Positions 1-50,440 of a stretch of DNA of 64,000 bases are shown piece after piece. Numbering within the stretch: position 1 is the stretch's first letter; each line of letters starts with the position of its first letter. Below the pieces are notes generated by a model, which was given only the letters and a program-made list of their open reading frames with translations, ran no database searches and was not told the DNA's origin. A program made the translations under genes and the position numbers. Source of the DNA: Laetmonice hystrix (taxonomy: Eukaryota); contig OZ249441.1 of the NCBI GenBank assembly GCA_965235115.1, positions 27,280,001-27,344,000 on the forward strand. Direction: 5' to 3'.

Positions 1-266
1 TTGATTGATCTTTTCTTGATCAAATCGTACCAGGTCCTCAGTTCCTACATGAAGGATCATCACTTCTGGTTTCAAGGGCTGGAACTTTTTTAGGAGGTCT
101 TCCAGAGTTTTTCCCACAGATGAGAACTGCAGGGTTGGGTACGCTAAATAACGGATGCATGAATTGGATGCATTTTGGGTGAGACCATTTTGGCTGGTGG
201 CCGCCATCTGGGTAACGAGATATATCGTGGCATCACCAAGAATCCACACCTGACGTCGTTCACTGG
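1..266 (-). CDS. SGNH/GDSL-hydrolase-like exon, copy A (truncated by window edge), catalytic Ser replaced by Ala
   Basis: Not in the ORF track. Manual translation after acceptor ttaaacag|CC gives SERRQVWILGDATIYLVTQMAATSQNGLTQNASNSCIRYLAYPTLQFSSVGKTLEDLLKKFQPLKPEVMILHVGTEDLVRFDQEKINQ, colinear with the copy B exon; block I-like WILGDA and block III-like LHVGTED. Confidence 0.85.
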
Positions 267-3200
267 CTGTTTAAGTGCAAAAAAAAATCATTGATTATAA
301 AGCATTGCCAAAAATTGCGATTAAAGAAAAACGTATACGCTCACAAGGTCACTCAATGTAAACGGAAATAGCGACAAATGAAACTTAATATGACTACCTT
401 ACCTTAGTTTATAGACAGTATATGGTTACCTTATATTTAATCGGAACATTAATGTTTTTGAGATATCGCTGGGGTGGGGGCTAAAAACTTTCTATCCAAC
501 ATTCATTGCAGGTATTATTTTCAGAGTTTTGGAGCCAGGACTCATTATTATATAATATGCAACCTTCACTGACCTTTCAAGGTCACTGAAAGTAAAGAAC
601 ATTAGTTTTAAGATAAATATCTCATACGATTTCTAATTTGTGAATTACAGTATAACCTGCACCCTCTTGTTTTTTTTCAAGCTATAGGCCAAAATAGCAT
701 GCGTTACATATTATGGAGAGGAAATAGAACAAATATGGCCATAAATTAGTGTAAAATGTCAACGTTGTATACACTTCTAGGAAATCACTGACCATGGCTA
801 TACAGAAAAACGTAAGTCCAAACAGATGGATGTACGGATCGAAGACAAATCGTACTCCCCTTGAAATTGATGGCTGACAGCAAATCCTTATTAGACAGTT
901 TCCCACATGAACAATAACATTTCCTGAGACGTCAAATTATATTCTGTATTCCCTCTTTCTCAAAAAGATGCCATACAAAAATGTTTCCTTACGTGTCATA
1001 TAATCAAAGTTACAACACATGTCCATAGAATTATATTATATACTTACAACCCTTTCCATTCCAGAGCAGCAGTGGTGGCGGAATGTCGCTCTCATCAAGC
1101 CTCGTCAGGGCAGTTTGTAGTTTTCCACCAGTCCAACCTGGCTTTTTATTTTCCTTAACAGGCCAATCCTTTTCGCGCGTATATTCCACCTTCTCTTTTA
1201 TCATGGCTCTATATGCTGCAGGATTATTCAGTTCCTCCGCAGATATACGCGACGTCTGAAAAGGAAGCATTGCTTGCCTTTCTTTTCGACTAGGCTTTGA
1301 TCCTTGGGAACCAGGCATTGGTCTTTGTGGTCCGGGTCCTTGTGGCATTGGATCTTGTTTTCTGGTCTCATGTGGCAGTGATCCTTGTGGACTGTCCCCA
1401 TGTGGCATTGGCCCTTGCGGACCGAGCCCATGTGACACTTGTCCTTGTGGACCTGGCCCATGTGGCATCGGTCCTTGCAGACCTGTCCCGTGTGGCATTG
1501 GTCCTTGTGGGCCTGGCCCATGTGGCATTGGTCCTTGTGGACCTGGTCCATGTGGCATTGGTCCTTGGGGACCGGGCCCATGGAACATTGGTCCTTGTGG
1601 ACTGGGCCCATAGGGCACTGGTCCTTGTGGACCAGGCCCATGGGGCATTGGTCCTTGCGGACCAGGCCCATGTGGCATTGGTCCTTGGGGACCGGGCCCA
1701 TGGGGCATTGGTCCTTGGGGACCGGGGCCACATGGCATTGGTCCTTGTGGACCGGGGCCACCTGGCATAGGTCCCTGGGGACCGGGTCCATATGGCATTG
1801 GTCCTTGTGGACCCGGCCCAGGTGGCATTGGTCTGGGTGGCATAGGGCCACGAAACATTGGTACAGGTTGCATAGCCCAAGGTGGCATAGCCCTAGGAGG
1901 CATTGTTCCTGGGGGCATGGAGCGAGGTGGCATTGACCCAAGTGGTATAGCCCCAGGCGGCACAGCTCCTGGGGGAAAAGCCCCTGGTGGCATGGCTCCA
2001 AATCGTGGACCACCTGTATTACTGCCACAGAAACGACCTCCTGGAAACTGCTGTCCTGGGACTTGGTATTGCATGCCTTGCTGACCTGGAGGAGTCTGTA
2101 CTGGCTTTTGATGAAAAGGACCAGGACCAGGAAAATGCTGAGGGAAAGGAGATCCCACTGGAGCAGCTGGATTTGGTCCTGTAGGGTTGGGCCATGGGTA
2201 ACCATTCCCTGGTTGCCGATGACTATCTGTATAACGCCGATATTCAGGGCTCCTACCTCTCCGGTTGTTATGCCAGGATCTTGGCGATAAACTGCGACCA
2301 CGGCTGCTGAAGGATGATGAACGACTGCTTGAGCTTAGACTCTCGAGGGACAGGTTCTGATTACGGCACCTCTGCCTGGTGCGAGGTGGAGAAACTGAAA
2401 GACTAATCTGTCGTGCACGGTCCCTCCGGTCCCTCCGTTTTTCTCTGTTTCGTCCCGATTCATTCAGGGGCTTCTTTTCTGAAGTTTTGACACTAACTTT
2501 CTTGACATCTCTACGGGTGTAACTTTTCTTTATGTCTGTCTGCTTTCTCCTGGTTTCCGATTTCTGACTTCTTGTCTTCTTGTTATCTGACACGGTACCT
2601 TTTTTTGAGTGTTCCCTCTTCACCTCTGTATGTTTGGAGGATGCCATTTCTTTAACATTAGCGTCCTTATATACCTTTTTAAATTCTTCTTTTACTTTTA
2701 CTTTGTCTTTTACTTCCGGTTCGCTGTCAGAACCCCCAACTTCTTCTAAAACAGTATATCCCTCTAAACTCATGGCACCTGGTTCCGTGTCCCTAGATAT
2801 CACATCGCTGAAGGTTGACCCTCCAGGATCCTTTATGTCTGTACTCTGTGCAGCTTCTTCATCACGTTTCTGAACTAAGGATATTTCTGGAGACTTTCCT
2901 TTAGTCTTGGAACTTTCCCTTCCCTTTGAATTACGTACTGAAATCCTACTGCTACTTTCTAACCTGGATCTCATGGAGGTTGACCATGACCCCTTTTTAA
3001 CCTTACTCTCCCCTGTCTTTCCCTCCCTGGAGTCTTTCTGATCAGAAGAACTAGCTAACATGGGGGACAAGGAGCGTTTATCAGGTTTCACCACAGCAGG
3101 CGCCTTTGAATGGCCTTTGGACCTTGACTGCCTTCCAGAGCTGGAACGATCCAGAGACTTCGAGCGAGTTCTGTGTCTGTTTGCTGGAGACCTTATCCGG

Positions 3201-6200
3201 AGTCTGTTCCTAGACCGCTCAGGAGACCTTGAACGGAGTCTCTTCCTATGTAGCTCTGGAGATTTTAAACGGAGCTTGTTCCTTGACTGCTCTGGAGACC
3301 TTGAACGGAGTCTGTTCCTAGACCGCTCTGGAGACCTTGACCGGAGTCGGTTCCTGGACCACTCTGGGGATCTTGACCGGAGTCTGTTCCTGGACCACTC
3401 TGGGGATCTTGACCGGAGTCTGTTCCTGGACTGCTCCGGAGATCTTGACCGGAGTCTGTTCCTGGACTGCTCCGGAGATCTTGACCGGAGTCTGTTCCTG
3501 GACTGCTCTGGGGACCTTGACCGGAATCTGTTCCTAGGCCTGTCTGGAGATCTTGAGCGCAGTCTGGTCGAAGGGAGATCTGGAGATCTTGAGCGCAGCC
3601 TGTCCCGAGAGAGATCTGGAGATCTTGCATGTAGTCTGTTCTGAGACAGCTCTGGAGATCTTGATCGCAGTCTGTTCCGAAACAACTCTGGAGATCTTGA
3701 GTACTGTCTGTGCCTAAACAGTTCTGGTGACGTTGACCGCAGCCTAGCAAACTCTGGAGACTGTGACCTCAGTCGATGGCTCAACATCTCGGGCGATCTT
3801 GACCTCAAATGCCACTTCTCACTCGTCATGGTTAGACTCGGTGACCTGGACCTGGATCTAGAAGAATGGTGAGGCAGTGGGCCACTGGGTGCCAAGGACT
3901 GACTGGTGACAGGTTCACTCGGCTGTCTTCCGGAAACTGCTCCTGGGAAAGATGCTGTCAAACTGCTACTTGCAGAAATGGCAGTCATTCCCAAGTAGCT
4001 GATCTCTTGATTTGTAGAACCCACATCATTGGACAGACTTCCATATGGTGAAGGCGTTGGCAGGTTGGTACCGCTCTTCATCTTCAGAATTCCTTTTAAG
4101 CCCGTGGTGCCTGCTGGCGTAACACTGGTAGCCAGTATTTTCTGAGGCAAGTTAGAAGAAGACCACGACGTCTCACTCTGAGTCTCCTCGGCCGCCACTC
4201 CTGTATATTCAGCACAACCATATAGAAACACATTAAAACCAACTAAGAAGCAATGCAGAGAATATAGACAGCATAAGTTCAATATAAAATGAACTAACAA
4301 AAATCCTATCTGAGTTAATGGCTGGAATTTTACTGAAATGGCAACAACTAAATGACAAAAGTACAAGCACAGTGTGTGCCTGTGCTTTTTCCCTCTTTTA
4401 CCTCTTGGATCAGGCTAATTTATTTCTGATATCCCTGCCAGATCGAAGAGGTATCCCTCGAGCTTACTTTCCGCTCACTTCAGTACCTATTCATAAATGT
4501 GCGCTTAAAGCTTCCTGGCATCAATAAGAATCAATAAATCCTTGCACTTGAACAACCAAGCTGTCGTCAACCTGCAGAAGATATGAAGTGGAGTTTGATT
4601 TTGGATTTAACCTCTCTAACGTATCATATCGAGGTGGTCAGATTTTCTGGTGGAAGAAACTGGAGTATGCCAGGGAAAACCACCGACCTTACAGCAGATA
4701 ACGCACAAGCCTGATGTCTGGCTAGAGATACACAGTGGAGACCCCACACTGACGTCAACTGGATACAGTGGTCAACATCTAATTATGGCCACATTGGCTC
4801 AGATATGATTTGTCCCTTCTGTTCCACGTTTGTGAAACACTTGCAATTAGTCTTTCAATCTCAGCTTGCTCTGTTGTGCTGGAGTCACCAAGGCTTCCAG
4901 CTCCACTTCCAGGGCCTAGCTTTTCAGAGATTAAGCTTAAACTTTAGCACGAAATTCGGTTTTGAAAAACTGGGCCCAGATGTGAACTATGAATGGTAAC
5001 TACCATACATTGATTGTGACCCGTTAGGTGCTACAAACCAGATTACCGTCTTCCCTATTGTACATACATCAGACATACACTGTCTCTAGTCTAATCTCTT
5101 ATCAAGGCGTCTTTTCTTCCCCCGTGAATTCACCAAGGTTTGTTTTAAATTATAGCAATTACCAGGATTGACTGGTAACCAGCCGGTTAAAGAAACCTTT
5201 ATTGTAAAACACTTATGCCTCCGAGGGGACACCATGTAACATGCCAATCCTGATATGTCATCACCGAGACCGTACCCCCACAACTGTCTAGAGAGAAAAT
5301 GAGAAAAAGTGACAAAACCGCGATTACGCGGTCGACAGATCAGAAACTTAAATCAAACATATATTTTAACATACCAACATCATAACATCACAACTCCCTG
5401 CAAACAAAGCCAGTCCACATTAAATTATGAGCGGGGTATCACAGCTGGTAATAAAATGTACCAAATTTCTGCTACTGGACCCATTGGAAATTTGTTAACA
5501 CATCAGTTGACAATTTTTGTGTAACGACCAAACTAGACAGACCCTGTTCCTTCTTCTTTTTCCTTCTGCTAGAAAGTCACTCCTCTCATCAGGGCCGTCA
5601 GAACTCTCAGGGCCGAAAGGAACAAAGTTTTTTTCCATGAAAATATTGCGAAAAAAAGGTTATTATATTGCTTTCCAAAGATTGCATATCACTGTGTCTG
5701 AATCAGGTATGCAGTCAGAAAGAAAGGACATTGGGAAGAGAAACGTACTGGGATGCTCCAGTTACCTTTAGAGTGTGGACTCCGGTCAGGTTTATTGACG
5801 TAAAATTCTGGCGGGTTATTAAGTAAGGTGATTTTTCTAACCCCGCTAATTCTTGTAACAACAGATCTCTAGTCTCTTGTAATATTACTGAGGCCTCCTC
5901 ATTTCCCAAAACGTTTTTATTTACTGCAAGCTCAATTATACACTCTCTGTTTACATGTATGTATGTATGTTACAAGGAACGAAAGAACACAAGAACTGTC
6001 AAATAGTTTCAAGGACTGCCACGTACTTGGTTATACTTGTTCAAGTTCACGGAATGTTCACTTCAGGTACAAGATGAAAGCAGACAGCATGTACCCGGGT
6101 ACTCCTTAGCCCAACAAAATTTTGTTGGGCTCTTCCACATACATTACAAAATTGTGCAACACTTGCTAACAGCAATACGAGCAGCAAACGTTTCTTGATG

Positions 6201-9200
6201 TATCATGTTTCTTGATTTATGTTCAATGAGTTCAGCAAAAGTCAATGACTTGACGCATGGCTAATAACGGTGATGAGGTTACAATGGGCAGCCCCTGTCT
6301 CGGCAGTTGGTTCAGTTTCTGCCTTACTCTCAGTTGGCAGCCACTGCACCCAGGCTGCAAACACCAGCCTGAATGCTGTCAGAATACAATTTGCACCAGC
6401 TTCGTTCACATGACACCCATCAACCATGTATAGTCCTTCATCATTCCAATCCTTGTAGTAGTCATGGTCCAGAATATAGTACTTTCTCCCATTTTTACGC
6501 AACAAAGTCTGAACCAGACTGTTCACGTCACACCTCAACTTCTCCGTCTCCTCCAAAGGAACATCGACACCACAGGCAGCATGACGCATTATGATTTTGG
6601 ACCAAATCAATACTACATTTGGCAAGATGGTATAAATGTCTTTGATCAGTTTCAACACACTGTCAAAAATCTGGTCCTTAGAAAGTCGAGCCAGGTCCTC
6701 TGCACCAACATGTAAGGTCAGCACATCCGGAGCACGCTTGCATAGCTGCAGGCACTTCCTAATAGTTGTGCCAACAGTGGAGAATCGCAGGGCTGGATGA
6801 GCGAAGTAACGGAATGAGCTATTTTCGACATTCTGATTGAGACCATGCTTGCTTTGGCTCGCCACCTGGCATACCAAGTAGACTGTCGCATCACCAAGTA
6901 TCCAGACCTGACGACTAAGATCGGCTGTTTAAAGAGAGGAGTGCCAAGATATCAACAAAAATATCAAGAAAGAAAAATTGTACTGCACTGAATTTGCTTG
7001 AGAAGCACCTTTCCCTTTCTGTATTGACTGCACATACATTGGTAAAATAAAATAAAACACAAAGAGCAACATTACAACAGATTGTGAATTTACTGCTATA
7101 CAGTCAGACCTCATTAATACGTGCTTCTGTAATCCGTATACCTCACAATCCGAACACACTTTCTGGTAACCTCTTCTACCATTTTCTATTTAAAATGATT
7201 CAGTAACCCGTATATTTCACAATCCGAACACATTTTAATGGGCACCAAGCTGTTCGGATAAACGAGGTGTGACTGTATATATACTGCTAACACTGAAACT
7301 TAAATCATGTCCCATATCTGGATCTTTTACATTCCAGGTTATAAGTATAATACAATACATCACTTAAAAAGAGAGCATATTTACATTTCTGCAAGTCCCA
7401 CATGTGAAGTGGCGGAATAGAGTCCTTGTTGGTCCTGAGAGCAGTGAGGAGTTTTTTACCAGTCCACCCTGGCTTTGTTCTACAGGCGACAAATTTTGTT
7501 GCTGCCATCTCCATCTTGATTCTGACATCAGAGGACAGTTGAACTCCCGCAAAAGGTAGTGGATTTGCTGAAATATTCCGAAAAGGCATGGGTCCACTAC
7601 CATCCTGGATAATTTCACTGCATTTCAAAACTTCCTTATCACCAGGATTTTGCTGTGCTGGGGCTTTGTCTGGGAGGCGCCGCTGATGTGGAGTAATTTT
7701 TACTGGGACTGGTGCTGATGCTATGATGTTGGATGTGATGCTCAATGCTGGTTTGGCATTAAGCTGCTGACGGCAAGTAATTTTTACTGGGACTGGCTGC
7801 GATGCTGGGTGCTGGTTGCTTGGTGTGGCCTGTCGGCCTCCAGTCCTCAAGGGTTTCCCCTCCTTGGAACTTGATTCTGATGACTCAGGACTTTCTCCAA
7901 TTACTGATGATCTTGAACTTGTCGGTGGTAACTTTACATCTAAAACGGGAGGTTTTTGATTCCATGGCTTGCTTGTCTGGGCTGCTTCTATGCCCGTGCA
8001 ACCTTGTATCACAGTTCGAAAACTTTTGATATTTTTACCTTCCTGGTTGTTTCTGGCTGGTCTTTCTTTGGAAGTTTTTCTTTTCTTTGTGCCTTTTGAT
8101 TTAACTTTATCTTTGTTTCTGCTTAAACTGTTTTGAGTTTCAATGGTTCCTCCAGTCGGCAGATTTCCTATAGAAGCTTTTCCTCCCTTTTTCTTTGAGA
8201 CATCTGGCTCAGTAGGATTTTCCTGCTGTATATGATGTTCTGAATTTTGACTCAACTCACTGCAGCTTCCAGCCTGCTCATCTGATGTCCACACTGGTGA
8301 CAAATTTTCTTCCGAGGTCCACACTGGTGACCACTCTTCGTCTGACGTCCAGACTGGGGACAAACGGACTCTACCGAATCTCACCTCGGTAAAAGGTAAC
8401 TTAGGACTTGGGAAAGACGTGTCACTGATCGAACTCAGGCAACTTGGGCTCCATTCTGATGGAAGACTATGCCTAACCTCAGTAGACGGAATTCTGCTTG
8501 AAGTTGAAGATGATGGTCTTGGATGTTCCACTTTCGACAACTTTTTATCCTGAGCTTTTTTCCTCGATTCTTTCTTAGCTTTCTTTTTTCTCAGACCCCC
8601 TGCCTCGCCAGTTTTTTTTATGCTTGCTGTTTTAATAGATTCAGTCTTTAGACTTCCATAGTCTTTGCAAGCTGTGGACTTTTCATTTGCTGGAGGAAGG
8701 CCTTCAGATGTAACTTCGCCCCATTTTTCATGTTCACTTTCTGAGCTACCAACCTCTTCTACAACAGTAAATTCCTTGAGATCTATGACCTTGCTCTCCA
8801 CACTTAATGTATCACTTGATATACTGGACATGACCTTGCTCTCCACACTTAATGTATCACTTGATATACTGGACATGACCTTGCTCTCCACACTTAATGT
8901 ATCACTTGATATACTGGACATGCTTGAGGTTGACCTTGACCCTCTACAAACAATTGGATGATAACTTCTGTCCTCTGAGGTTAGGTTCCCATGCGACAAA
9001 TACCTGCAAGGCTCTAGAGACCTCGACCACAGTTGGTTCCTTGATCTCTCAGGTGACCTTGAGAGTCGTTGCTTGCAAGGAGATCGTGACCGTATTCTGT
9101 GTCTTGGAGACCTTGATTGCTGTTTGTGCTGAGAGAGGTGCGAGAACCTTGACCGGTGTCTGTCCTGAGAGTTGTCTGAAGACCTTGACCGATGTCTATC

Positions 9201-12200
9201 TCTAGATCGGTTTCGGGACCTTGACCGGGGTCTGTGCCAAGACAGTTCTGGGGGCCTCAACCGCGGACTGTTCCGTGACAAGTCTGGGGACCTTGACCCG
9301 GGTCTGTGCTGAAACAGGCCTGGGGACCTTGACCGTGCTCTGTGCCGAGACAGGCCTGGGGACCTTGACCGTGGTCTGTGCCATGACAAGTCTGGGGACC
9401 TTGACCGTGGTCTGTGCCGAGACAGGCCTGGGGACCTTGACCGTGGTCTGTGCTGTGACAAGTCTGGGGACCTTGACCGTGGTCTGTGCCAAGACAGGTC
9501 TGGGGACCTTGACCGTGGTCTGTGCCAAGACAGGCCTGGGGACCTTGACCGTGGTCTGTGCTGTGACAAGTCTGGGGACCTTGGCCGTGGTCTGTGCCGA
9601 GACAGCTCTGGGGACCTTGACCGTGGTCTGTGCGGAGACAGGCATGGGGACCTTGATCTGCTTCGCTGTGTATCTATTGAAGCTAACGTAGGGAAATCTT
9701 TATCCCTAGGCCATCCTGATTTGCTGGCTCCTAGATCAGCCTGCAATGTAGGTCGACTATTCTCACTTAGAGATGTTACTGTCACATTATTCGTGCCCTG
9801 CTGCATACTTGTTATTGAACTCTCCGTCAATGCTGACACAAAAGACCCCTGTTCTAGAGTGGCAGGACTTTGAATGGCTGCTAATGCATTGCATACGTTG
9901 GCCGATTCCTCTAGCAGGCAAGGATTTGTCTTCTTAAGAATTCCTTTTGGTAACTTCTTGCTCCCCTGGGAAAACTTGAGATCCTGTGTTTGGTTGGCAA
10001 TATCCAAAGAAGGCGACAATTTTGAAGTTGTCACTCCTGTATAACAAGCATATTCAACAATGAGCATTTTACATCAGGAATTGGGAAACAATGCCAGGAT
10101 TCTGTACATTATCATTCACACGCCTCCTTTAAGTTCTTCATACTCAGTCATAGCCGACTATGAAAACCTCTGACCTCTCATGTGCTCTCACCATGTTGTC
10201 AAATACATTACAATACAGCTTTTATTTGCTCCAAAAACAGTGCAGACAAAATGACCTTCAATACACATGGCAGGTAGTAGTGTTTTAGTGCCACAAGACA
10301 ACTTATGTCTCACAGAATTTGCTAACTTGCCCATGTCTCCAAAAATCTGATTTGTCAATATATTCAGGCCTTCCAGCAGACCCTGATGAAAAAGTAGGAG
10401 AAAAATAGGACCACAATTTTGGAAAAAGCAGGAGAAACGTAGGAATTGGGGATAAAAAGTAGGATAAAAGTAGGAGTTTTGCAGGCTTGCAGGAGTAGTT
10501 TTCGTCCTTTACCAACGTTGATAGCATAATAAAGAGAGACCTCTTCAGGCTTGGTGCTGTACGATGCAGAGTCATAGTTTTCGGCCCTCGTGAAGGTGTG
10601 GTGCAGCCGGTCTACAGCTTTGGACCTGCAGTAACTACTCACTACTCCTGCACATTATAGTCTTGCATAATTTATATTATTTATGTATTATGTTAAATGT
10701 GTCAAAAGGATTCTACAAAGATGATTACATGTTAAAATTAGATAAGCTCTGCCTGACTATGACTATAGTCAGTGGAGCTAAAAATTGAGATGTATCACGA
10801 AAAAGTAGGAAAAAGAAGGAATTTCAAGAAAAAAAGTAGGAAAAGTAGGAGCAAGGCCAAAAAAGTAGGAAAAAGTAGGAAAAGTAGGACTGCTGGAAGG
10901 CCTGTATATTATTTCAATTGTTGGTTGCTGTCCTGAAACAACAAATTCACAGAAATGACAAATCATTCCTGAAGCTGTATAAATTTACTTTTAAACAAAG
11001 ACACTACCTGCCAAGTCTTAGGGGTCGATATAACTCCAGTGATGTTCTACCTATCTGAGGGGCGACTCCACTGATACTGTGACAAGGATCTATGAAGACC
11101 AGACCGTGGAAGGAGAAAAACCTTTACTCAGTAAACTAATGATAATATCAAGAGCTTTATACTATCAGGTTTTGAATCTGATTAGTGGCCATAATACTAA
11201 GTTTCTGGCTTAAAGAATTTATTTTTTGTTTGGGGAGCTTTGATTGATTGAATTTTACGACACGACTTTCCACTTGTAATCGTAGTATGATACTAATTTA
11301 TATCGGTCTTTCCCATTTCACTCCTGAATACACAACCTTCAGGCCTCTGAACATTGCGGGAACGATCGTTTCGTTCGCGCATTGCTCACATAGATGTCAC
11401 TTTGCGTAACTTAAACTCTGTTCTTGCAAACTCACTGGTTCTGGTGAAATAGACACAATAATTGACAATCTTTTAATGTCTCCTTCAGCATGCTTCTCAT
11501 ATATCGCTATGTTTATTGAATATTAAAGAAATCCATATCCATGTGTAAGTGATAAGTCTTTTACTGAGTTCACACAGCCTAACAGAACTTTTGTAAATGG
11601 GTTACGCAAAATGAGTGGGTTACCTTAAAAAAAAACATTTATGGGTTACGCACATTTTCAATTTTCAGAGGCCTGACCTTGGCTTCATCACTTGTATAAC
11701 AAAGCAGGCAGATTTTGCCTATGAATGTGTCAATACCTCTGTTTCCACCTCCACATTGAGTTTTACAATGTTAGGTCTTTCCAAGCAAGACAGGGTTACC
11801 ATTTGTGCTCGCCTGTACAGTAGAGTTTTGCATGTTGCTGCTATTTTTACTACCCTGACCTCTTGCATTCCTGGCTTGCGAGCTATTTTACAACCCAACT
11901 CATAAACAGGACCGGTGACGATTGAAATTGCACTGGTCCTTGGAAATTTCTACCAATCCAAACTAATTTCAGCATGTTTTCTAGGGCTGAACACTTGTGT
12001 CACGATATGATACGTAATCATGATACATGACAAACGATACGATACGTATCACAATATTTCTCAATGAAACTAAAAGTGTACTATGCTGAAAATAAAAAAG
12101 AATAGAACAGATCTGGTTAAATTTCAAACATTTTAATAGCTGAGAAGGGGCAAGCAGTGCCTTATAACCTTACATAGCCTTCAGGTTTTTCTTCAAGAGT

Positions 12201-15200
12201 GTAAGTTTGTCAACATTTTCTGCACTTGAGGCAGGACGCTGGGCAGTAACAATGTCCCAAGCAGTTGATCACACTCTTTCAGAAGGCACACAAGTTGCAG
12301 GTATTCCCAGATATGCCATGACTCATGGCGTATAGTTTTGTATCGATACTTTGACATTCATTTCGATGTATCGTATTGGACACAAAATATCGCAATGCAC
12401 CGATATATCGATGAATCGTTTCAGCCCTAATGTTTTCCAGGTATAAGTTAGTCAGAACAGTTCTAAAAGGTTACCTTCAGGCTGGCGGGTATCCTTGGTT
12501 ATTTCAGTGAGTGGGTAAGTGAATCACGCAATCCCTAAATAATGTACAACTGTAGTCTCTGAGAAATTGGAGAAGCAACATCAACACCAGTTGATAAGTA
12601 ATTAACAAATTAATCTACAGTCTGTGACTGTGAACAGTTCTCCTATTTCCAGGAGACGAGAGAAACCCCCACAAAAATAGGCGATTTAAAAGGGAAATAA
12701 AAAAAAGGGCTACGCTGTGGTTCCAAGGAGACAAGGGCTTGATGAAATATCACAGAAAAAGCAATGCAACATGATCATACACTTTCCTCCACGACCATGT
12801 ATCTATGTATTTTTAAAATAAAACAAACTTACTTATTTGAGAGAATTATAGGATAGGTCTATTACTATAATCATGTATGTCAAAGATTACTTTGGCTCTA
12901 CCAAATTCTTCTAACGCTGACCTGAAGTTATATGTCACTGTAAAGCTCTTAGTGATAGTTGGCATCTGACAATTTTCCAGATCAAAAAATTGACCCCTGT
13001 CATGAATGGCATACACTCAAACTCAAAGACCATGCTACGAATTTCAAGATGTTCACAAGCATAGCCCAGGAGGCTATTAAAGCAGGAGTAATGGAGAAGT
13101 ACTAATATTAAATGCGAGACCCAGCATTGAGTTATCAATCAATGGGCAGCTGGTGTCAAGGCCAAACCTCCCGTCTGTGTAAAAGTGTAATAAGCCATTG
13201 TCCAGGGAGGTGTTTCAACAAGTGCGTCAGATCGTCCTACCAGCGATGGACCAAAAATTACAGGCCCTACAACCAAGCGACAGACTGTCTGTTGCCAGTC
13301 GGACGATCCAACACGCTTATTATTAACACTCTCCAGGGCCTTCTTACAGTGAACAACAGATTTGTCCGCCCCCTCTCACCACAAAGGTCTACTTGTGTGA
13401 AAATATATTGAGTCGGAAAGTCAAGATCTACAACGGAGTTTAGAGCTATTCCAAGGAACTGGAGTCTTTCAAGAAATACTAGATAGGTACATTTGTAGAT
13501 GATGATTAAAATTAAAGATTATCAATGGGGCAGGCTTTTCTTTTCTTATTTTTTTCCAAGTATGTGTGGGCTTATGAAAGGTCTTGAACCAACATTTATG
13601 TAACATCCTAATCATACACTTGACACTTTCGATTGAGACCCTAGATATCTTTTGAGGGGTTTGGTATGCTTTGCAAGACTGTCTTTTTTTAATTGTATTT
13701 TCACTCATTCAGTCTTTTAAAAATAATGTAAATAGATCTTTTTCCAAGGCTCAAAGTGACCAGGTGGTCAGATATTGAGCACTGGCTGTTTTATGACCTG
13801 TTATTTTAAAACAAAACCTACTTACTGCCAAGGGATTCTGGCTCTCTTGAAGCTGATGAGTACAGGCGCGAAAAACGTGGCCCATCTTCATAGCTATATT
13901 GGTCTCGGTTCGTGTCTTGGCGATTGTCTTTGAATCTATCACGATCTGCAAAATGGAAGAAGAGAAATATAAGAAAACAGAATAAGACTGATTTTAATAG
14001 AGTTCTTTCCACATGCTGGTACACAAATTCTTCATTGAACAGGCTGGATAGTTGATTTGCACTCTAGATTGAGGGAGGCGCCCTCCAGTTTATGAAGTCT
14101 AAGCCCTTATCTAAAATAACAGCCCATGTCTGCATAATTTTTGAGTTATTGAAAAAAAGAGATATTCTCTGATTGCTTAAAGACATTTTACAGTTGATAA
14201 TTTTAATATTTTATTGCATAATTAAGCATGGCTGGATAAGTGTACTTACTTAAAGTTAATTGCCTCAATTGCTCCTTTTCCTTCCATTCCTGATACTCTT
14301 CTTGCACCTTAAATGAAACAGAATCTCCATAAACAACATGAAAAATTACTACCGGTACATACTTGATAATGTAATTATATAAATGATAATAAAAAAGGTG
14401 TTTATTTTTTTTTACTTTAGAACGTGATTTCAGACACAGTGGTGGAACTGTCTAAAAAAAACAGTTCAACATCATATTTTTAGTCATCAATTTCGTGCAG
14501 TAATTCCCTCCCTTGTGAGAATTAGCAAAAAAACAACCCTTTTTATCCATAGCTAATGTTAATACTAATAATAGAGCATTCTTTTGTACGGTTACAGAGT
14601 AAATCCTACTTACCACCCTGACTAAATTACATGCCAGCTTTTCTGACTCTTCTAACCCTTTTAATGTGGAATGCCTGAAAGTAACAACATGGTGAATAAA
14701 AAATGTGCATTGCAAAAGGAGTTACCCAACATTATCAGGGGTTCAACCTAACCAAAAATTGTTACTAGTAGTGATATCCTTCATCACTAGGCCAGGGGGG
14801 TGTTTCAATATCAGGATTGTCCGACCGGGTGACGGACCATGTCCGACCCAGTCGGACAGGCCTATGGGTGTTTCAATAAACGTTCGATTGGCGTCCGACC
14901 CGGTTGGACTGTCCGACTTTGTAGGACTAGTCGGGAGTTGTCCTAGGCGGCGGTCGGACCAAAAAACATGGCGGACCAACTACTGTTTGATTCTCGACGT
15001 GTATGTCAAATTTGGCTGCCAATTTGAGAAATTCCGCCGTCCTTACTAATGTTTAAAGTCCACTCCTCCTGTAGTGAAGGTTTTCATATGTATTCCTACC
15101 CTTATTAGATGTATCTAATAATCAAAGCATCCACAGACACCGGTTGTTTACAAGTGAACTGATATGCTGCACAATCATGTGGCCTGGCCGGATAGACCCA

Positions 15201-18200: not shown

Positions 18201-21200
18201 ATTTGAAGCTTAAAATTTTGCATGTGTTCATTATATCGGGTGGATAAAAAAAAACGCCCGAAATTTAAACTTTAATATTTCAAAAACTATGCATTATAAT
18301 TCAATAAAATTTCTCTTACTATAACTTCATGATATTATCTCTGGTATGTTAAAGTTTCAGCTCAATAGTTTTGATATTAATCCCGTGGCGCTAAAAACAA
18401 AAATCAGTGTCTAAAAACGCAATGCCGGAATTAGGTCAAATATCATGCAGCTGCCAGGTGTCCAATTTGATACCTGTTTGATGCACCGCGTTGTACCTTG
18501 GGTAAAAACATTTTCAATATTTAGTTTTTGCATGTTTTACAATATGTATAATGTTGTGGACCACTAGATATATACTAAATTATGGGCTATTCTAGTACTT
18601 CTAGAGAAAAACAGATGTTTAATGTGCCAAACCCTACAGAGAAACTGCAACATTAGGACGATATGACTGTAACCAGAAGTTCAAGGGAAATCGTACCATT
18701 ATCACGTTTAGCAACACATTCAGAACGTTGCATATTTCCCAATGTTGCGAAGATATTTCCCTATCAGAGATCAGGAAGTGCATTGGCTCATGGAAAATGA
18801 GACTAAGAGCAGTATGGAGTGAAAACGGGGGACCGATTGACCACCTACTCTAGTGTGAGGCCAGGGACTCTGGGTGCGACTACCACTCGCTTTAGCCCGG
18901 CATTGCGCTTTTGTACAATGATTTTTGTTTTTAGCGCCACGGAAATATTATCCAAGCTATTGACTTGTAACATTACCAACTAAGAGACAACATCATGAAG
19001 TGATAGCAAGAAAAATTTCATTGAATTACAATCATTACTTTTTGAAATATTGAAGTTTAAAGTTCGGGGCGTTTTTTTTTATCCACCCGATATATGTAAA
19101 GGTACTCCCACAATTTTTTTGAGCCAAATCTGAATCGGTGACCCGGGGACCTCTGGTTGAGTTCATATGGAATGACCCTAGATTGTAACAAATAGGGCTG
19201 GGATGATACACTATATTCACGATACGATATGTATCTTGATATTTGCTCCACGATATGATACATATCACGATATACATGTATCAAAATTCCCGTCAAACTG
19301 ATTACTGATCAACAACAGCTGATCTATAGCGTCTTATTTTATGATCGCCAACAGTCCTACCTGCTTGGTGACATGATTTAGTCACCCACAATGATATCTG
19401 GTTGCCACAGGTGAGCAGACTAGCATTAGCATGAAAATGTTGTGAAAAGAAATTTTTAGGGAATACAACTTAACTTATACAGGGATGAAAGTGGCCAGCT
19501 GTAAAATTTCCTGAAATTCTGACCGGGGGGGGGGGGGGAGCGGCGGGGGCCAATGTCCATAATTAATATTTGTTCATGCGCACATCCAAGGCTTACCCCC
19601 CCCCCCCCCCCCTTAAAAAAAGTCAGGCTAGGAACAGCAGACAATCATGATCCGATAAGGCCTCCTAGCTATTATATATTATAGGGCCTAGTCCTCAGTA
19701 TTTAGTCGCCACCCCCCCCCCCCACCCACCCCCTCCTCAACCCCCCACCCCTGCTCAGCGGCTCTCAGCCAAGCAACACAGGCTTCGCTGAGTCGAGTGG
19801 TTCAGCCCCTGTGTCCATGTGCCACTCATGTTGTTGTGAAAATTGTCACTTCCGGTCTTATCAGGACACCTGCACTGATCGACAAATGTAAGGAAAAGTC
19901 CTGACAACCCCAAAACTTTAGTGAAAACCACTTACGTAATGCCACTATCCTCAAATTTATATGCAAGAACACATTATGAGAACTTACTGACATATATACT
20001 AGGCAGATTCATAGAACTAAATTGACCCAGTTTCCTGTGAGGAGTGACATTGTGATGGTGCGTAGTTCGTCAGCCTAATCACTATCACCGGGACTAGACA
20101 GACCGGTCTGTCTATAGTCTCGTTGCTATCACTAAGTGAGCGCTCAGGCAAAACTCGCGCATGGATATGGCATAATGGCAAGCCTGAATCAACGGGCTTC
20201 GCAGCTGCCTGACCATCAATTTTGCCTGAAGTCATTACCTGAGGTGAGTCGCTCTCACCACAGCGACACGGGGCCGTGCCTGCCAGACGGGACAGACGCC
20301 ACCGCGTGCCGGTAGAAGTCAGCCCACGCGGGCCGGTCTATGTGAGCGATGTCACCACAGCTACAGGGACCAGCACCCCCGGCAGACCGGCCTATGCACG
20401 GTGGCACCCGTGACACTGGACGGGTTTGAGACACTCTAATATCCCCATCTATAAACGAACTTTGGCAGGTAGAGATATATTGAGCTGCATGGTGTTAAAA
20501 AACGTCCTGGAAGGGGATATTGTTTCATTTGATATTAATTGCCCACCACACAGTCCAGGGCAATACTTAGCCTTGGCTTAGGCCTACCTCTTTTGCCTAT
20601 AGATCTAGGCCTATTTCCTTTTTTGGGTGTTATTTCTTGGGGGGGGGGGGGGGATTTTCCTGATTTCAGGAAATTTCCTGAAAACTTTCATCCCTGCTTA
20701 TAGGGCAGATCAGGGTTGGACAAATCCACTAGCCCGAGGTCCGGAACCTGCCTATTATTGCTTTGGACTTGTGAAAATATATAAATGGTAGTCCGACGGA
20801 CTCTTGCCCAGTCTTGGTTAAACCTAGTATCATTGACAGTGGTATCTGTCAGGACCTGGTGCCAGGCGTGGATGTAGCAGGTCACAAACCTCCATCCTTC
20901 AAGCCTCAAGGATGCTGGAGGTCTGTGGCCTGTAATGACAATGATGATGGCAATCTTAACATTTCCATAAACACTCCATGAAATTGTGGAGTTTTTGACC
21001 AGTGGACCCAAGAGCAGCACCAGTAAATATTCTGAGTTACTGGTCCTGGACCAGTGACTCATAATTTGTCCAACCCTGCAGATGCAAGTCATTTAAAGGT
21101 GCTATTCGTCTCGCACAGAATGGCATTTCTCCTATCATACATTGTGCACATCGTACTAGAAAAAATTCCTACCGATACCATTGGCCTGATAAACTTTCTA

Positions 21201-23625
21201 TTAGTTTGTGTGCAGCATTTGAAACCTATCTCGGTGCGCACCGAGATAGAGCCATTTCCTATGGTGGGGCGTGTCAGGGTCTCCACAGGCCTTCTGAGAG
21301 AGCCCCATTTGTGCCGTTATCCATGAAAAATTTTGATTTCCTTTGTTGTGAATCTATTTCCATGATAGGTGGGATCACATAAACGTCAACAAAATTAAAA
21401 ATTAAAAAATTGAACTTTTCTTCACGAATAGCACCTTTAAATAATAGTCAACGAAGTTTTGACTTCGACCTTGAGTACAAAAGTTGCTTATTCTATGAGA
21501 AAAAAATTTAGGAAAAAAACATGTACTTACTCTAGGTGTATGTGTAAAGGTTTGTTGCTTGCGATGCCAGAACCCTTGCCCACCAGGATTGCCTTTGCTC
21601 CAGTTATACGTCGTAGATACTCAAGATTTTCTCCCTTCAAATAACAGCATCAGAATATGACATCAATACTTGAGTACTGGAAAAATTATTTGTAATTTTT
21701 TAAATGATAATGTATCACCAGCACTGTAGAGAATGCAACATCAACTTACACTATGGGGGGGGGCATGTCTTTCTTCTGACAAATGGTTACTCGAGGCACA
21801 TTAATTTTCTAAAGCTTCAGGGCTGTCACTAATACGTATACAATAAATTTAATGCATCAAAGACTACTCACAGTTTCACCCAAGACCTTGGAACGAACAT
21901 CAAACTCTGGTGGTGCATCATCCACTCCTATGTAAACGCCCGTTTCATAGTTTTCCATCTAGGAAAAAAAGACAGATTCTGAGGTCAGGATGAATTTTTT
22001 TATAATTTCTGACACTGCATACCTTGGCTTGAAGATCTCGTGCAGCATTTTAGCCATCACAAGGTTAGTCACCATGGTCCATGTTACTCATCATGAACTA
22101 GAAGTCTGGCTGCCACCATTAGCTTTTTCAACACACTGAACATGAAGACAGAAGGGACTGTTCTTTAAAAGCATTCAACACCATAAGTACCAACAGGCGA
22201 GTTCAAGCCAGGCAGGGGTCGATTTCGACGGGAGTCCGTGAGTCCAAGACTCCCAAAAATTGGGACGGACTCCTGGCAGCCACCTGACCAGGAGTCCGGC
22301 TGTCTCCTAGATATTTACACACAGATTGATGCAGGTTTTAACCCAGGACCAGGTGATGATTGCCCAGTCACGGTGAACTGAATATCTGCTACTCAGCAGG
22401 GGTCACAAGACGTTTCACTCAGCCCCCCTCCCCCATCATGGCTTGATTACTTGATTGTTTATGCCAAACTATTATGGCATAACACCGTCTGTAATTGCTT
22501 TTTTTACATCCAGTCACGTTGTATTCCCTATAGGATAGCGGACTCCCACTTTTTTGGGCGGACTCCTAGAGTTTGCAACATGGGAGTCCTGCTGACTCCT
22601 AAAAAATCACACACGAAATTGGCCCCTGCCAGTGGACCATAAAATGAATAACATTACACTGGTACCATCACAAGAAATTAACCTCAAGATTGGTGTACCG
22701 GTAAATATAGTCAACTTTGGTCAGTCTGGGCCATCTCAGTTAGCAGCAACAGTCAACAGAAATTCTTATATTTGCTTTGGGAAAGTGGAAGAGTTATAGT
22801 GTTACAAAATACTGACAGTTTATTGTAAAAAGTAAATGTGTTTGTGACAATGTTATGTGGTTCATTAAATTATAAAAGAAAATGGTCAATAAAACAAGAG
22901 AGAAACAAATCTTTATAATTCTTTAAAGTTTCAGTGACAATGCCTTACCTCTCGTTGCTCTTCCTGCTGTGGCCGTTGCTGCTGGGCCGGAGAAGTTTGC
23001 ATAGTTTGGCCAGAGTTACTGATACTTGGATATCCCAAACCTTGTTGTTGTTTTGCTGTACTTGGCTGCATCATTTGGCTAGAGTTTCTGTTATTGTAGC
23101 CCAGATTTTGCTGTTGGGTCTGTGTAGGCTGGACCATTTGGCCTGAGTTTATGCTACTTGTATATCCCAGGTTTTGTTGTTGCTGTGGTTGAGCAGACTG
23201 CATTCCCTGGCTTGAATTTCGGTTATTAAGGTAACCTATTCCTAAGCTCATTTGTTGATTCTGTGGTTGCGCCACTTGCATCAATTGGCCTGAGTTACTT
23301 GTGTATCCCAGGCCTGCGGCAGACATCCCAGCACTTGGTTGTGTAGCAAACACACCAGGTATAGTACCACTACCCCCAACCTGTAAAATTCCGTAAAGGA
23401 AAATGATTATGAATGTCACCAGCTCTACAGAACACCAGCATAGAAGAGAGTGGCTGATTAAATTCACTTGGGCAGAACTTTGGGCCTACTCTCAAGTGTA
23501 GAGTCATATAATCTAACCAGTAACTTAACTTAATTTCACACAATAGAATTTCCTTAGAACTTAGATAAAAAATAACTTGCCTGAGTTCCTGAAGCACCAA
23601 CATTATAGCTATAGCCTCGAAACAT
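1..23625 (-). CDS. Large multi-exon unnamed gene, 3'-partial: prion-like Q/N region + KH domain + duplicated [RS-repeat + SGNH-like] module; about 2630 aa within the window if it is one ORF
   Basis: Phase-compatible exon chain on minus strand: 23625-23581 (ATG, MFRGYSYNVGASGTQ), 23380-22949, 21958-21872, 21634-21531, 14674-14614, 14307-14250, 13945-13826, 11089-11051 (tentative), 10036-7385, 6924-6328, 5923-5766 and 5283-5163 (tentative), 4200-1048, 266-<1. All have AG acceptors and GT donors (one GC donor). Whether the downstream module (4200-1) belongs to the same transcript or is a second tandem gene is unresolved. Confidence 0.7.
1048..4200 (-). CDS. Giant RS-repeat / Lys-rich / Gly-Pro-Gln-repeat exon, copy A (3153 nt, phase 1-1)
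   Basis: Inside the 1111-aa ORF; acceptor tatacag|GAGTG at 4200, donor T|gtaagt at 1047; length divisible by 3; RSRSPE and GPGPQGPMPH arrays. Confidence 0.9.
1310..1825 (-). repeat. Coding tandem repeat, 30-bp unit (GPGPQGPMPH), about 17 units
   Basis: Plus-strand unit ggtccttgtggaccaggcccatgtggcatt recurs with 30-nt period; it generates spurious long ORFs in other frames. Confidence 0.95.
3165..3820 (-). repeat. Coding tandem repeat, 36-bp unit (RSRSPEQSRNRL), about 18 units
   Basis: Plus-strand unit gatcttgaccggagtctgttcctggactgctccgga with 36-nt period. Confidence 0.95.
4592..4802 (-). mobile_element. Degenerate tRNA-derived SINE-like element
   Basis: Minus strand reads a degenerate tRNA-like head, then ggtcggtggttttccctggcatactccagtttcttccacc (resembles the central domain of V/Meta-type SINEs) and a ...gttaaatccaaaatcaaa tail. 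Family assignment from memory, not from a search. Confidence 0.5.
5163..5923 (-). CDS. Two putative linker exons (5923-5766, 5283-5163) between SGNH copy B and RS exon copy A
   Basis: Open frames (I)NKNVLGNEEASVILQETRDLLLQELAGLEKSPYLITRQNFTSINLTGVHTLK and LWGYGLGDDISGLACYMVSPRRHKCFTIKVSLTGWLPVNP with donors AAG|gtaact and G|gtaatt; phases 1-0 and 0-1 bridge the flanking exons. Acceptor choice is ambiguous. Confidence 0.45.
6328..6924 (-). CDS. SGNH/GDSL-hydrolase-like exon, copy B (597 nt, phase 1-1), predicted catalytically inactive
   Basis: Acceptor ttaaacag|CC at 6924, donor GAG A|gtaagg at 6327. Translation contains QVWILGDATVY (block I, GDS to GDA), LHVGAEDL (block III, GxND to GAED) and DGCH (block V DxxH). 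Confidence 0.85.
7385..10036 (-). CDS. Giant RS-repeat exon, copy B (2652 nt, phase 1-1)
   Basis: Inside the 920-aa ORF; acceptor tatacag|GAGTG at 10036, donor T|gtaaat at 7384; shares start, KGILK, TVxEEVG and PGWTG motifs with copy A. Confidence 0.9.
8785..8919 (-). repeat. Perfect coding triplication, 45-bp unit (MSSISSDTLSVESKV x3)
   Basis: atgaccttgctctccacacttaatgtatcacttgatatactggac occurs three times in tandem. Confidence 0.95.
9020..9665 (-). repeat. Coding tandem repeat, 36-bp unit (RSRSPDLSWHRP), roughly 15-19 units including degenerate ends
   Basis: Plus-strand unit gaccttgaccgtggtctgtgccaagacaggtctggg with 36-nt period. Confidence 0.95.
10365..10904. mobile_element. Non-autonomous hAT-like MITE with 6-bp TSD
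   Basis: TIR CAGGCCTTCCAGCAG / CTGCTGGAAGGCCTG; TSD tatatt at 10359-10364 and 10905-10910; subterminal aaaagtagga repeats. Confidence 0.85.
11340..11675. mobile_element. Non-autonomous hAT-like MITE with 5-bp TSD
   Basis: TIR CAGGCCTCTGAA / TTCAGAGGCCTG; TSD acctt at 11335-11339 and 11676-11680. Confidence 0.85.
11982..12429. mobile_element. hAT MITE with canonical 8-bp TSD
   Basis: TIR TAGGGCTGAA / TTCAGCCCTA; TSD atgttttc at 11974-11981 and 12430-12437; subterminal gatac/gtatc repeats. A partial relative begins near 19193. Confidence 0.9.
13206..13333. mobile_element. Small PIF/Harbinger-like MITE
   Basis: Degenerate TIR ggaggtgtttcaacaag / cttattattaacactctc flanked by CAG on both sides; related to the element at 14796. 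Confidence 0.55.
14250..21958 (-). CDS. KHDC4/SF1-type (type I) KH domain encoded by four exons (21958-21872, 21634-21531, 14674-14614, 14307-14250)
   Basis: Spliced translation MENYETGVYIGVDDAPPEFDVRSKVLGET|GENLEYLRRITGAKAILVGKGSGIASNKPLHIHLE|HSTLKGLEESEKLACNLVRV|VQEEYQEW; follows the pattern of the second KH of KHDC4/BLOM7 as I recall it (LFVG..FNV..KV.G...YL.HI...TGAKV.L.GKGSG..P..I.I.H....GL..A..L..NL...V..EY). Phases 0,0,2,0,1 are all compatible. Confidence 0.85.
14796..15648. mobile_element. PIF/Harbinger-like non-autonomous element
   Basis: TIR GGGGGTGTTTCAATA / TATTGAAACACCCCC, flanked by CAG (left) and CTG (right); subterminal gtccgac repeats; a second TIR-like copy near 14866. Confidence 0.75.
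16012..19179. mobile_element. Large fold-back DNA element with about 1.1-kb inverted arms
   Basis: Ends AGGGTCATTCCATATGAACTCAACC / GGTTGAGTTCATATGGAATGACCCT; left arm 16012-17117 is the reverse complement of 17281-19179 once the nested insertion is removed; about 160-bp spacer; no transposase ORF; TSD not resolved. Confidence 0.9.
18236..19090. mobile_element. Tc1/mariner-type MITE nested in the right arm of the fold-back
   Basis: TIR TCGGGTGGATAAAAAAAAACGCCC / GGGCGTTTTTTTTTATCCACCCGA with TA duplication; removing it plus one TA restores colinearity with the left arm (cattatatatgtaaagg vs cattatatgtgtagagg). Confidence 0.9.
19480..20696. mobile_element. Non-autonomous hAT-like element with 6-bp TSD
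   Basis: TIR CAGGGATGAAAGT / ACTTTCATCCCTG; TSD cttata at 19474-19479 and 20697-20702; subterminal aaatttcctgaaa motifs. Confidence 0.85.
21097..21436. mobile_element. Kolobok-like MITE
   Basis: TTAA|AGGTGCTATTCGT ... ACGAATAGCACCT|TTAA. Confidence 0.8.
22213..22628. mobile_element. hAT-like MITE with probable 5-bp TSD
   Basis: TIR CAGGGGTCGATTTCG / CGAAATTGGCCCCTG; flanks ccagg and ccagt (4/5 match); subterminal ggactcc/ggagtcc repeats. Confidence 0.7.
22949..23625 (-). CDS. First two coding exons of the KH-RS-SGNH gene (start exon plus Q/N/S/GY-rich repeat exon) joined by a GC-AG intron
   Basis: aaccATG TTT CGA with an in-frame TGA upstream; donor CAG|gcaagt at 23580; acceptor ttttacag|GTT at 23380; donor GAG|gtaagg at 22948; 432-nt exon. 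Confidence 0.75.
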
Positions 23626-42240: not shown

Positions 42241-42763
42241 TTCTTTTCCCCTTGCTTTCGGATACCCTTTTGTGGACGCAGGCCAGATGACATCCCATTG
42301 CCCTTGGTGCCCCTCCTTGGTTGGAGAAGTAAATTTGGCGTGGTGCCCTTCCAAACTTGTTGAAAATGTGGTGCCCTCCTTTTAACAAGGTCCTCCCCGA
42401 GGACAATTTTTGCCCCCTTTAAGTTCTAATTCGAGGCCTGTGATATCAGTATAATTAAGTTAGGCCCTAGATCCTCAACCTATTGTCACTGTCAGTGTCA
42501 CAGTGTCAGTGCCAAGAACTTGAAGAAGGCAAGATCGAGAGCCAATGAGTAAAATCATAGACCTAGAATAAAAGCAAAGAGTAGTCAGTAGGCCTAAGAC
42601 AGTTGAACTTGAAGACTGAGCTAGAGTCTACTAAGTCTAAGAATCTATCTAGACTATACCTTTAGACGTGGGACCGAAAAATCTATCTACCGTCTACTAA
42701 CTCGTGAGACTCATCTCTCACACTCATAGGCTAGTCACTGTTCACACAGTCACCCATACTCAC

Positions 42764-43236: not shown

Positions 43237-50440
<7,204 letters not shown>

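Follow-up and report, generated by a model that had tools for sequence, protein, structure and literature searches.

Organization of the locus

We analysed a stretch of 64,000 nucleotides from Laetmonice hystrix (contig OZ249441.1, 27,280,001-27,344,000), hereafter the window, and all coordinates below are positions within it. The exon chain was built from stop-to-stop reading frames, with the DNA read at every boundary. The minus strand, which carries every gene feature discussed for this locus, holds exons that probably represent the 3' half of an orthologue of the splicing factor KHDC4/BLOM7, followed by two cassettes, each composed of an exon with an arginine-serine (RS) array and a terminal exon encoding an esterase-type SGNH domain devoid of its nucleophile. 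The exons are collected in Table 1.

Table 1. Exons of the probable KHDC4 locus and of its two cassettes (a slash marks an exon boundary).
Feature	Position	Strand	Remarks
Q/N/S/G-rich low-complexity exon	22949..23380	-	144 codons; 33 Q, 19 S, 17 G, 12 N; LGY repeats
KH exon a	21872..21958	-	29 codons, V-Y-I-G-V-D-D-A-P-P-E-F...; phase 0 to 0
KH exon b	21531..21634	-	G-K-G-S-G loop of a KHDC4/BBP-type KH domain; phase 0 to 2
KH exon c	14614..14674	-	H-S-T-L-K-G-L-E-E-S-E-K-L-A-C-N-L-V-R-V; phase 2 to 0
KH exon d	14250..14307	-	V-Q-E-E-Y-Q-E-W...; phase 0 to 1; donor A/GTAAGTAC
40-codon exon	13826..13945	-	phase 1 to 1; branch point towards the alternative 3' ends
Cassette 1, RS-rich exon	7385..10036	-	884 codons; phase 1 to 1; RSRSP-x-LS array of 12 amino acids
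Cassette 1, terminal SGNH exon	6242..6924	-	stop TGA 6244-6242; AATAAA 5921-5916
Cassette 2, RS-rich exon	1048..4200	-	1051 codons; phase 1 to 1; K-P-G-W-T-G-G-K-L motif near the end
Cassette 2, terminal SGNH exon	1..266	-	G-D-A; continues outside the window for 512 nt, up to a TGA

The Q-rich exon is internal (acceptor ttttacag/GT, donor GAG/GTAAGG, phase 0 to 0). The two cassettes sit inside an 18-kb KHDC4 intron, and all their exons are of phase 1. The RS exons, 2.7-3.2 kb long and each with an extended disordered part, both start at an acceptor that reads ...tatacag/GAGTG in phase 1, which matches the phase-1 donors at 14250 and 13826, and contain 67 and 79 RS/SR dipeptides, respectively. 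Tandem Repeats Finder placed the RS array of the first cassette at 9109-9656 (period 36 nt, 15.2 copies) and that of the second at 3184-3700 (period 36 nt, 14.4 copies), and located an array of the decapeptide G-P-G-P-Q-G-P-M-P-H (30-nt unit) at 1314-1833 in RS exon 2. RS exon 1 also comprises a K/S/E-rich disordered part and, close to its 3' end, the motif K-P-G-W-T-G-K-K-L. No domain was found by Pfam in the RS exons, be it RRM, cwf21, PWI or any other. The SGNH exons have no in-frame ATG before the domain and could not be translated by themselves. No start codon lies near RS exon 2 either, and in RS exon 1 the open frame begins only 12 codons ahead of the acceptor. The polyadenylation signals lie 323 nt downstream of the SGNH stop in cassette 1 and 208 nt downstream of it in cassette 2 (AATAAA or ATTAAA). 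The two units are 40-55% identical in the RS arrays, 33% in the region around K-P-G-W-T-G-x-K-L and about 45% in the SGNH domain, and are diverged tandem paralogues.

A preliminary description of this DNA, made from its letters, had listed a Q/N/GY low-complexity region, a KHDC4/SF1-type KH domain in the exons from 21958 to 14250, two RSRSP arrays and two SGNH-fold domains lacking the nucleophile, one of them at 6924-6328, and all of these parts were found again. The exon chain that it proposed was right in the coordinates 21958, 14250, 10036 and 6924 and in the phases, but missed the exons 14674-14614 and 13945-13826.

Two further observations were made in RS exon 1. A perfect triplication of 45 nt at 8785-8922 (100% matches) encodes M-S-S-I-S-S-D-T-L-S-V-E-S-K-V three times and is a recent in-frame expansion. 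In addition, the DNA runs described below differ from the assembly by 12 single bases at 8943-9998, 6 synonymous and 6 non-synonymous, two of the 12 exchanging R and W inside the RS array; these differences are too few for a selection argument.

Identity of the KH part

KH exon b, tested as a single exon, matched the KHDC4/BBP-like KH family of Pfam (PF22675) with an E-value of 4.2e-5 and 23.8 bits against a cut-off of 30, and its counterpart in a second species (L005, see below) matched the same family with an E-value of 4.9e-7. When a profile of this exon was made from the two species, the sole match in the PDB was 2yqr, 'KIAA0907 protein' (E 8.4e-4), which is the former name of KHDC4. A search of the ESM Atlas with the KH exon gave no usable match. 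The case for the KH part as a KHDC4/BLOM7 orthologue is therefore good but not complete, the matches being exon-sized and under the Pfam cut-off and the N-terminal exons not having been located. The protein that the preliminary description had left unnamed would thus, in its KH part, be KHDC4/BLOM7.

Fold and relatives of the SGNH domain

Pfam recognized the SGNH domain of the window as Lipase_GDSL_2 with 19.4 bits, under the gathering cut-off of 32.9. An exhaustive phmmer search of 1.84 billion protein representatives retrieved 201 SGNH relatives, the best of which is merely 26% identical, and an AlphaFold2 model was calculated from an alignment of 39 of them. The predicted local distance difference test score of the model was 92.2 and its predicted template modelling score 0.88. 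Foldseek gave 168 PDB matches at E <= 0.001, the top 50 being all of SGNH/GDSL type, and VIA-align superposed the model on an SGNH hydrolase with a Z-score of 19.4 and a root-mean-square deviation of 2.5 Å over 178 residues. The modelled domain can be confidently assigned to the three-layer alpha/beta/alpha SGNH fold.

Both SGNH exons read W-I-L-G-D-A at the position where the family has G-D-S or G-H-S. The catalytic positions of the first copy are Ala12, Ala41, Glu75, Asp168 and His171, so that Ala, Ala and Glu stand for Ser, Gly and Asn, and the D-x-x-H pair is kept in the window copies (D-G-C-H and D-G-V-H). At least 90%, or most, of the relatives have Gly in the block II column and Asn in the block III column, and the full set of five catalytic residues is kept in most of about 150 SGNH relatives. 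With the nucleophilic serine and both oxyanion residues lost, no serine esterase action would be possible. The two closest relatives that also lack the serine (P0004 and P0010) have G-D-M and G-D-T at the nucleophile position and are without the Asp/His pair as well (N-G-F-Y and S-G-F-Y), which indicates that catalysis is not what is conserved.

When the family profile was compared with the PDB, the top match was 4c1b, 'ORF1-encoded protein', with an E-value of 2.6e-16 (the next was 1e-7), and 4c1b again came first when a single window SGNH sequence was used (E 0.042). This entry is the esterase of the ORF1 protein (ORF1p) of ZfL2-1, an L2 long interspersed nuclear element (LINE) of zebrafish (PMC3905857), and the proposed link of the SGNH domain to a LINE ORF1 was thereby borne out. 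The genome (627 Mb, 35 contigs) contains only two strong SGNH copies, with 162 and 132 bits, the next having 56; the cassette 2 domain is the second-best SGNH match of the whole genome. No open reading frame (ORF) for a reverse transcriptase follows either SGNH exon. An apparently intact LINE is found elsewhere in the same genome (L009, C3:3110000-3119999, positions 3149-8498). Its ORF1 of 565 amino acids (aa) encodes an intact esterase (G-D-S/G-T-N-D/D-G-L-H) along with a Cys-rich zinc-finger-like motif and a coiled-coil-like stretch, and its C-terminal region by eye resembles the IMPACT/UPF0029 family; its ORF2, of the APE-RT type and 1043 aa long, has an endonuclease-like N-terminal part and reverse-transcriptase motifs, also read by eye. 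Other SGNH loci of the genome (L006-L008) are stand-alone ORFs of 300-386 aa with an intact G-H-S and no reverse transcriptase on their strand. The KHDC4 cassettes differ from the LINE L009 in their intron, their two copies, the lack of an adjoining reverse transcriptase and the dead catalytic residues; they are exons of the host, with an ancestry in common with the ORF1p esterase family.

A KH domain was found in none of the best 150 of the 201 SGNH relatives, in keeping with the earlier statement that the architecture had not been described.

Transcript evidence

The region is represented in four runs of a single sample (X1-X4), whose contigs were compared over 8450-14400. Runs X1-X3 cover introns and exons evenly at about 60x and are therefore genomic DNA; for this reason they were rejected as RNA support. 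Run X4 covers just exons and high-copy repeats, and alone shows joints at the predicted splice sites, so that it behaves as RNA; its joints have GT..AG ends and are absent from the DNA runs.

The joint from 14250 to 13945 skips 304 nt with GT..AG on the minus strand, and a contig that runs from 14308 into 14615-14644 fixes the exon 14674-14614. From 13826 the contigs of X4 have two continuations. One of them, 30 nt long, corresponds exactly to window 266-237, that is, to the first 30 bases of SGNH exon 2, and this junction is in frame. The KH-SGNH link is real at the transcript level for at least one junction. Since a contig of 30 + 30 nt is the output of a k=31 graph with branch points on both sides, it fits the use of alternative donors and acceptors. 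The other continuation is 255 nt long and matches, with one mismatch, an exon at window -4455 to -4557, 4.4 kb past the window start. This exon of 103 nt has an AG acceptor and a GT donor and is the canonical downstream KHDC4 exon. A third cassette was considered for this second loose end, which resembled another RS exon of the GAGTG type, and rejected, because the loose end maps to the canonical exon and the genome has only two strong SGNH copies.

The KH exons had been expected to splice to 10036 and 6924. In the contigs, 14250 joins 13945 and not 10036, but KH and SGNH do meet in one transcript by way of 13826 to 266. Four isoform models are open in frame, namely KH to SGNH2, KH to RS1 to SGNH1, KH to RS2 to SGNH2 and KH to the canonical exon, and the three that contain a cassette end in a stop. 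Run X4 covers RS exon 1 at 8596-9983 with low depth; of the words sampled from cassette 1 it contains 62%, and of those from cassette 2 (taken as window 1-4200) 32%. The inclusion of the RS exons in KH transcripts is something that we infer, as is any function discussed below.

Conservation in other species

P0010, one of the two relatives without the serine, is encoded on a 4.75-Mb contig of an ENA assembly (L005). Upstream of it and on the same strand, tblastn found the KH exons a-d in order, with 59, 68, 62 and 43% identity and E-values down to 2e-13; exon a is 58-59% identical to L005 930-1025, exon b 66-68%, and exon c 62% to L005 1898-1960. A Q/P-rich ORF lies ahead of the KH exons, in the same place as the Q-rich exon of the window. 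After the KH exons comes a 250-codon R/E/S-rich exon, which ends in a F-V-P-G-M-H-Q-G-E-L-E-K-V-L...P-I-F motif, starts at an acceptor reading tgtacag/GAG and, like RS exon 2, is without a nearby start codon. KH exons, charged exon and dead SGNH exon thus follow each other on one strand within 7 kb, with an SGNH domain about 24% identical to that of the window, in one RS/charged + SGNH unit as compared to two in the window. Three splice features have the same phase in the two species: the donor of the last KH exon (A/GTAAGTAC), the acceptor of the charged exon and the intron before the SGNH domain.

P0004 comes from a Logan contig of another run (L003), which is too short to reach any KH exons; on it, a charged exon with the P-G-M...L motif of L005 is separated from a dead SGNH exon by an intron that is again in phase 1. 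A maximum-likelihood tree groups the two copies of the window together (100/99) and unites this pair with P0004 and P0010 (97/95). This single supported clade points to one origin, followed by a later duplication in the lineage of the window. A profile search of 5.8 billion proteins revealed no members of the dead-SGNH clade beyond P0004 and P0010. The KH-SGNH gene order is conserved across deep divergence, and the same KH, charged exon, dead SGNH order in a distant species speaks against the lineage-specific protein supposed in the preliminary description.

Alternative explanations

We consider it probable that the locus is the 3' half of a KHDC4/BLOM7 orthologue whose transcripts have alternative, stop-terminated and unannotated 3' ends made of RS array and dead SGNH cassettes. 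Several points weigh against this interpretation. The RNA evidence consists of contigs of one small run (X4), whose type is not on record, and the junction from 13826 to 266 is carried by one unitig-like contig of 60 nt. The KH assignment leans on short exon-level matches under the Pfam gathering score, and neither regular-expression and motif scans nor tblastn with an approximate human-protein probe gave anything significant for the N-terminal KHDC4 exons and the first KH domain. The SGNH domains of the window are near neutral (isoelectric point 7.0-7.7) and give no hint of nucleic-acid or acidic-lipid binding, so that the sequence favours no particular ligand; a basic surface as a hint of RNA binding was rejected on the same ground. 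Moreover, no junction into 10036 or 4200 is present among the loose ends listed for X4, an in-frame ATG at 10067 lies 10 codons upstream of the acceptor of RS exon 1, and the RS exons could belong to separately initiated transcripts. These last points would be accounted for if the RS + SGNH units were independent genes nested in the KHDC4 intron, with promoters of their own, and if the KH-SGNH junction were a rare read-through or chimeric splicing event with no role at the protein level; it would also fit that the depth of X4 on RS exon 1 (2-28) is not tied to that of the KH contig (20.8). We regard this as unlikely, considering that both paralogues and L005 have kept the acceptor in the same phase, which fits the upstream phase-1 donors, that no start codon is conserved in RS exon 2 or in L005, and that the frame of RS exon 1 opens so shortly before the acceptor. 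Order and strand beside the KH exons are also kept across deep divergence, and the junction actually observed is in frame.

The preliminary description had joined KH, RS1, SGNH1, RS2 and SGNH2 in the single chain of one giant protein. Such a chain would be allowed by the common phase 1 of all the exons and by a weak phase-1 GT (AGA/GTAAGG) right after the SGNH1 domain and before its stop. However, SGNH1 terminates in a TGA that is followed by AATAAA, and therefore the two RS + SGNH units cannot share one protein and are instead alternative 3' ends; the weak GT reaches 6/9 as a donor and is matched neither in SGNH2 nor in L005, and the units are paralogues, of which L005 has only one. The giant protein is consequently extremely improbable. 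Very unlikely, too, is that the SGNH exons are decaying debris of a retroelement, that is, LINE ORF1 remnants occasionally exonised and without function. Their nearest solved relative is indeed a LINE ORF1p esterase, their catalytic residues are lost, and LINEs with an esterase in ORF1 exist in the same genome (L009), but the paralogues, although only about 45% identical, have retained open frames of 226 and 260 codons, the position and phase of the intron are conserved in three species, the clade is monophyletic, only two copies exist with no adjoining reverse transcriptase, and the model is confidently folded.

Possible role of the alternative 3' ends

If the locus is a KHDC4 orthologue with alternative 3' ends, the transcript would choose its 3' end after the second KH domain and the exon 13945-13826. 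It would either skip 18 kb to the canonical downstream exons outside the window or end in one of the two tandem cassettes within the intron, and the possible products would be KH-SGNH, KH-RS-SGNH or ordinary KHDC4. RS arrays are the usual mark of SR-type splicing proteins, which fits the splicing role of KHDC4, and the array would bring the isoform to SR-protein or spliceosome surroundings. The dead esterase would most likely be a binding module, for an acidic lipid (as the ORF1p esterase), a protein or RNA. Together, the two parts would alter where, or with what, KHDC4 acts.

KHDC4/BLOM7 is a conserved, little-studied spliceosome-associated protein, and an isoform in which an SR domain and a pseudo-esterase take the place of the tail would re-target a splicing factor in a novel manner. 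To our knowledge, the role of the L2/CR1 ORF1p esterase in retrotransposition is unsolved, and a dead copy of it kept for long in a host gene would give a handle on what the fold binds.

Neighbouring features

Upstream of KHDC4, the minus strand carries the exons of another gene at 34795-39641. One ORF weakly matches SKA1 (E 0.0035), and other ORFs contain repeated P-x-M-P-E-[LF]-T-Y-K-F-N and P-P-[VM]-L-T-T-P-G-V-K-Q-V motifs. The ORFs at 34-40 kb were considered as N-terminal KHDC4 exons and rejected, since they are part of this SKA1-like gene. At 41658-42425 of the minus strand, an ORF of 256 aa resembles the C-terminal tail of a LINE reverse transcriptase (...H-L-H-W-L-P-V-R-Q-R-V-T-F-K...), and at 44349-50437 of the plus strand a row of ORFs reads by eye like the exons of a NAD(P)-malic enzyme.

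Other RNA-binding proteins with a C-terminal SGNH domain

A teleost family of uncharacterised proteins (P0021, P0040, P0059, P0074, P0076, P0097, P0121, P0123 and P0145), 1300-2040 aa long, combines CSDE1-like cold-shock domains (CSD) and an RS stretch with a C-terminal SGNH domain. Its members share a conserved E-D-D-I-K-A-K-Q-K-K-R-L-E-Q-F-N helix and have an intact G-H-S/G-G-N-D/D-G-V-H set. One RRM protein also ends in an SGNH domain of this family. In the nemertean Tubulanus polymorphus, the annotated isoform X1 of a SAFB-like gene with SAP and RRM domains (P0006; L010, OZ123229.1, 11560-13128) ends in an SGNH domain with G-D-S. This last exon is an alternative one, joined in phase 1 to a donor that lies within a longer exon whose frame otherwise stays open. 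A full-text literature search found no paper on KH+SGNH or CSD+SGNH proteins.

The similar layouts in teleosts and in the nemertean suggest a general pattern overlooked by annotation pipelines, which would miss it because the domain scores under the Pfam thresholds and is located in alternative last exons. It is conceivable, though we put it forward only tentatively and think it somewhat doubtful, that animals have repeatedly, and anciently in KHDC4, furnished the C-terminus of RNA-binding proteins with a LINE ORF1 esterase, encoded by an alternative last exon that follows an RS or charged linker; the cases seen involve KH in KHDC4, cold-shock domains in teleosts and SAP+RRM in the nemertean. 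If this were true, such proteins would form an unrecognised class of ribonucleoprotein (RNP) proteins, to which the SGNH module, whether active or dead, contributes a function in lipid, membrane or RNP anchoring that was taken over from retrotransposons.

SGNH domains, or weak matches to them, were also encountered in other settings. In geckos, giant uncharacterised proteins (P0001, P0003, P0007 and P0008) reach 3131 aa and contain as many as six SGNH domains of this family in tandem, several of them half-length matches, with mixed G-D-S, G-Q-S and G-D-A motifs. In the genome of the window, tandem arrays at many loci on C7, C10, C12, C21 and C8 (for example C7:18343953-18372069) consist of units of about 5.58 kb, with one ORF of about 839 aa per unit, and all share the same weak SGNH profile match (27.9 bits, profile positions 38-107).

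Comparison with known systems

The protein resembles human KHDC4 in its KH exon b, with a match under the Pfam cut-off to the KHDC4/BBP-like family, and in low-complexity sequence that flanks the KH domain on both sides. Human KHDC4/BLOM7 is a KH protein that functions in pre-mRNA splicing and binds SNEV/PRP19 (PMC2781463), whereas the gene described here can end alternatively in an RS array and a dead SGNH domain; a KHDC4 isoform with an RS or SGNH tail is not described in the literature found. The long RS dipeptide arrays in RSRSP context are like those of SR/SRRM-type proteins, but the RS exons lack a Pfam match to the RRM or cwf21/PWI domains.

The best structural matches of the SGNH domain among reviewed eukaryotic proteins are the catalytic subunits of platelet-activating factor (PAF) acetylhydrolase Ib (TM 0.69-0.72, Z about 18). 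These are, however, stand-alone enzymes with the full catalytic set, and are 16-19% identical to the window domain. A dead SGNH-like domain has a precedent in insect Oskar, a protein of RNA granules whose inactive OSK domain binds RNA. The likeness lies in an SGNH-like fold without the catalytic triad. With the family profile, Oskar gave no PDB sequence match at E <= 1, it is absent from the top 50 and the top 30 structural matches, and no LOTUS domain was seen, although no search was aimed at LOTUS. Oskar is mentioned among inactive SGNH proteins in the ZfL2-1 study (PMC3905857), and we treat the comparison as one of analogy, not of membership.

ZfL2-1 ORF1p resembles our case in that it functions in an RNP and carries the SGNH fold C-terminally. 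Its esterase is active, with the residues S143/G165/N195/D279/H282, and binds acidic phospholipids and not oligo(A) (PMC3905857), whereas Ala, Ala and Glu stand in place of the first three of these residues in the window domain. Unlike the LINE ORF1p esterase, moreover, the window domain is cut from the upstream sequence by a conserved phase-1 intron and exists in two copies only. The teleost CSD proteins and the Tubulanus SAP+RRM protein have the same succession of RNA-binding domain, long charged or RS region and C-terminal SGNH domain as the KHDC4 cassettes, but their catalytic motifs are kept (G-H-S or G-D-S, G-G-N-D and D-G-x-H), their RNA-binding domains are of other kinds and they fall outside the KHDC4-linked clade. 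The parts of the KHDC4 locus are of known kinds, and what is new is their arrangement in a known splicing factor.

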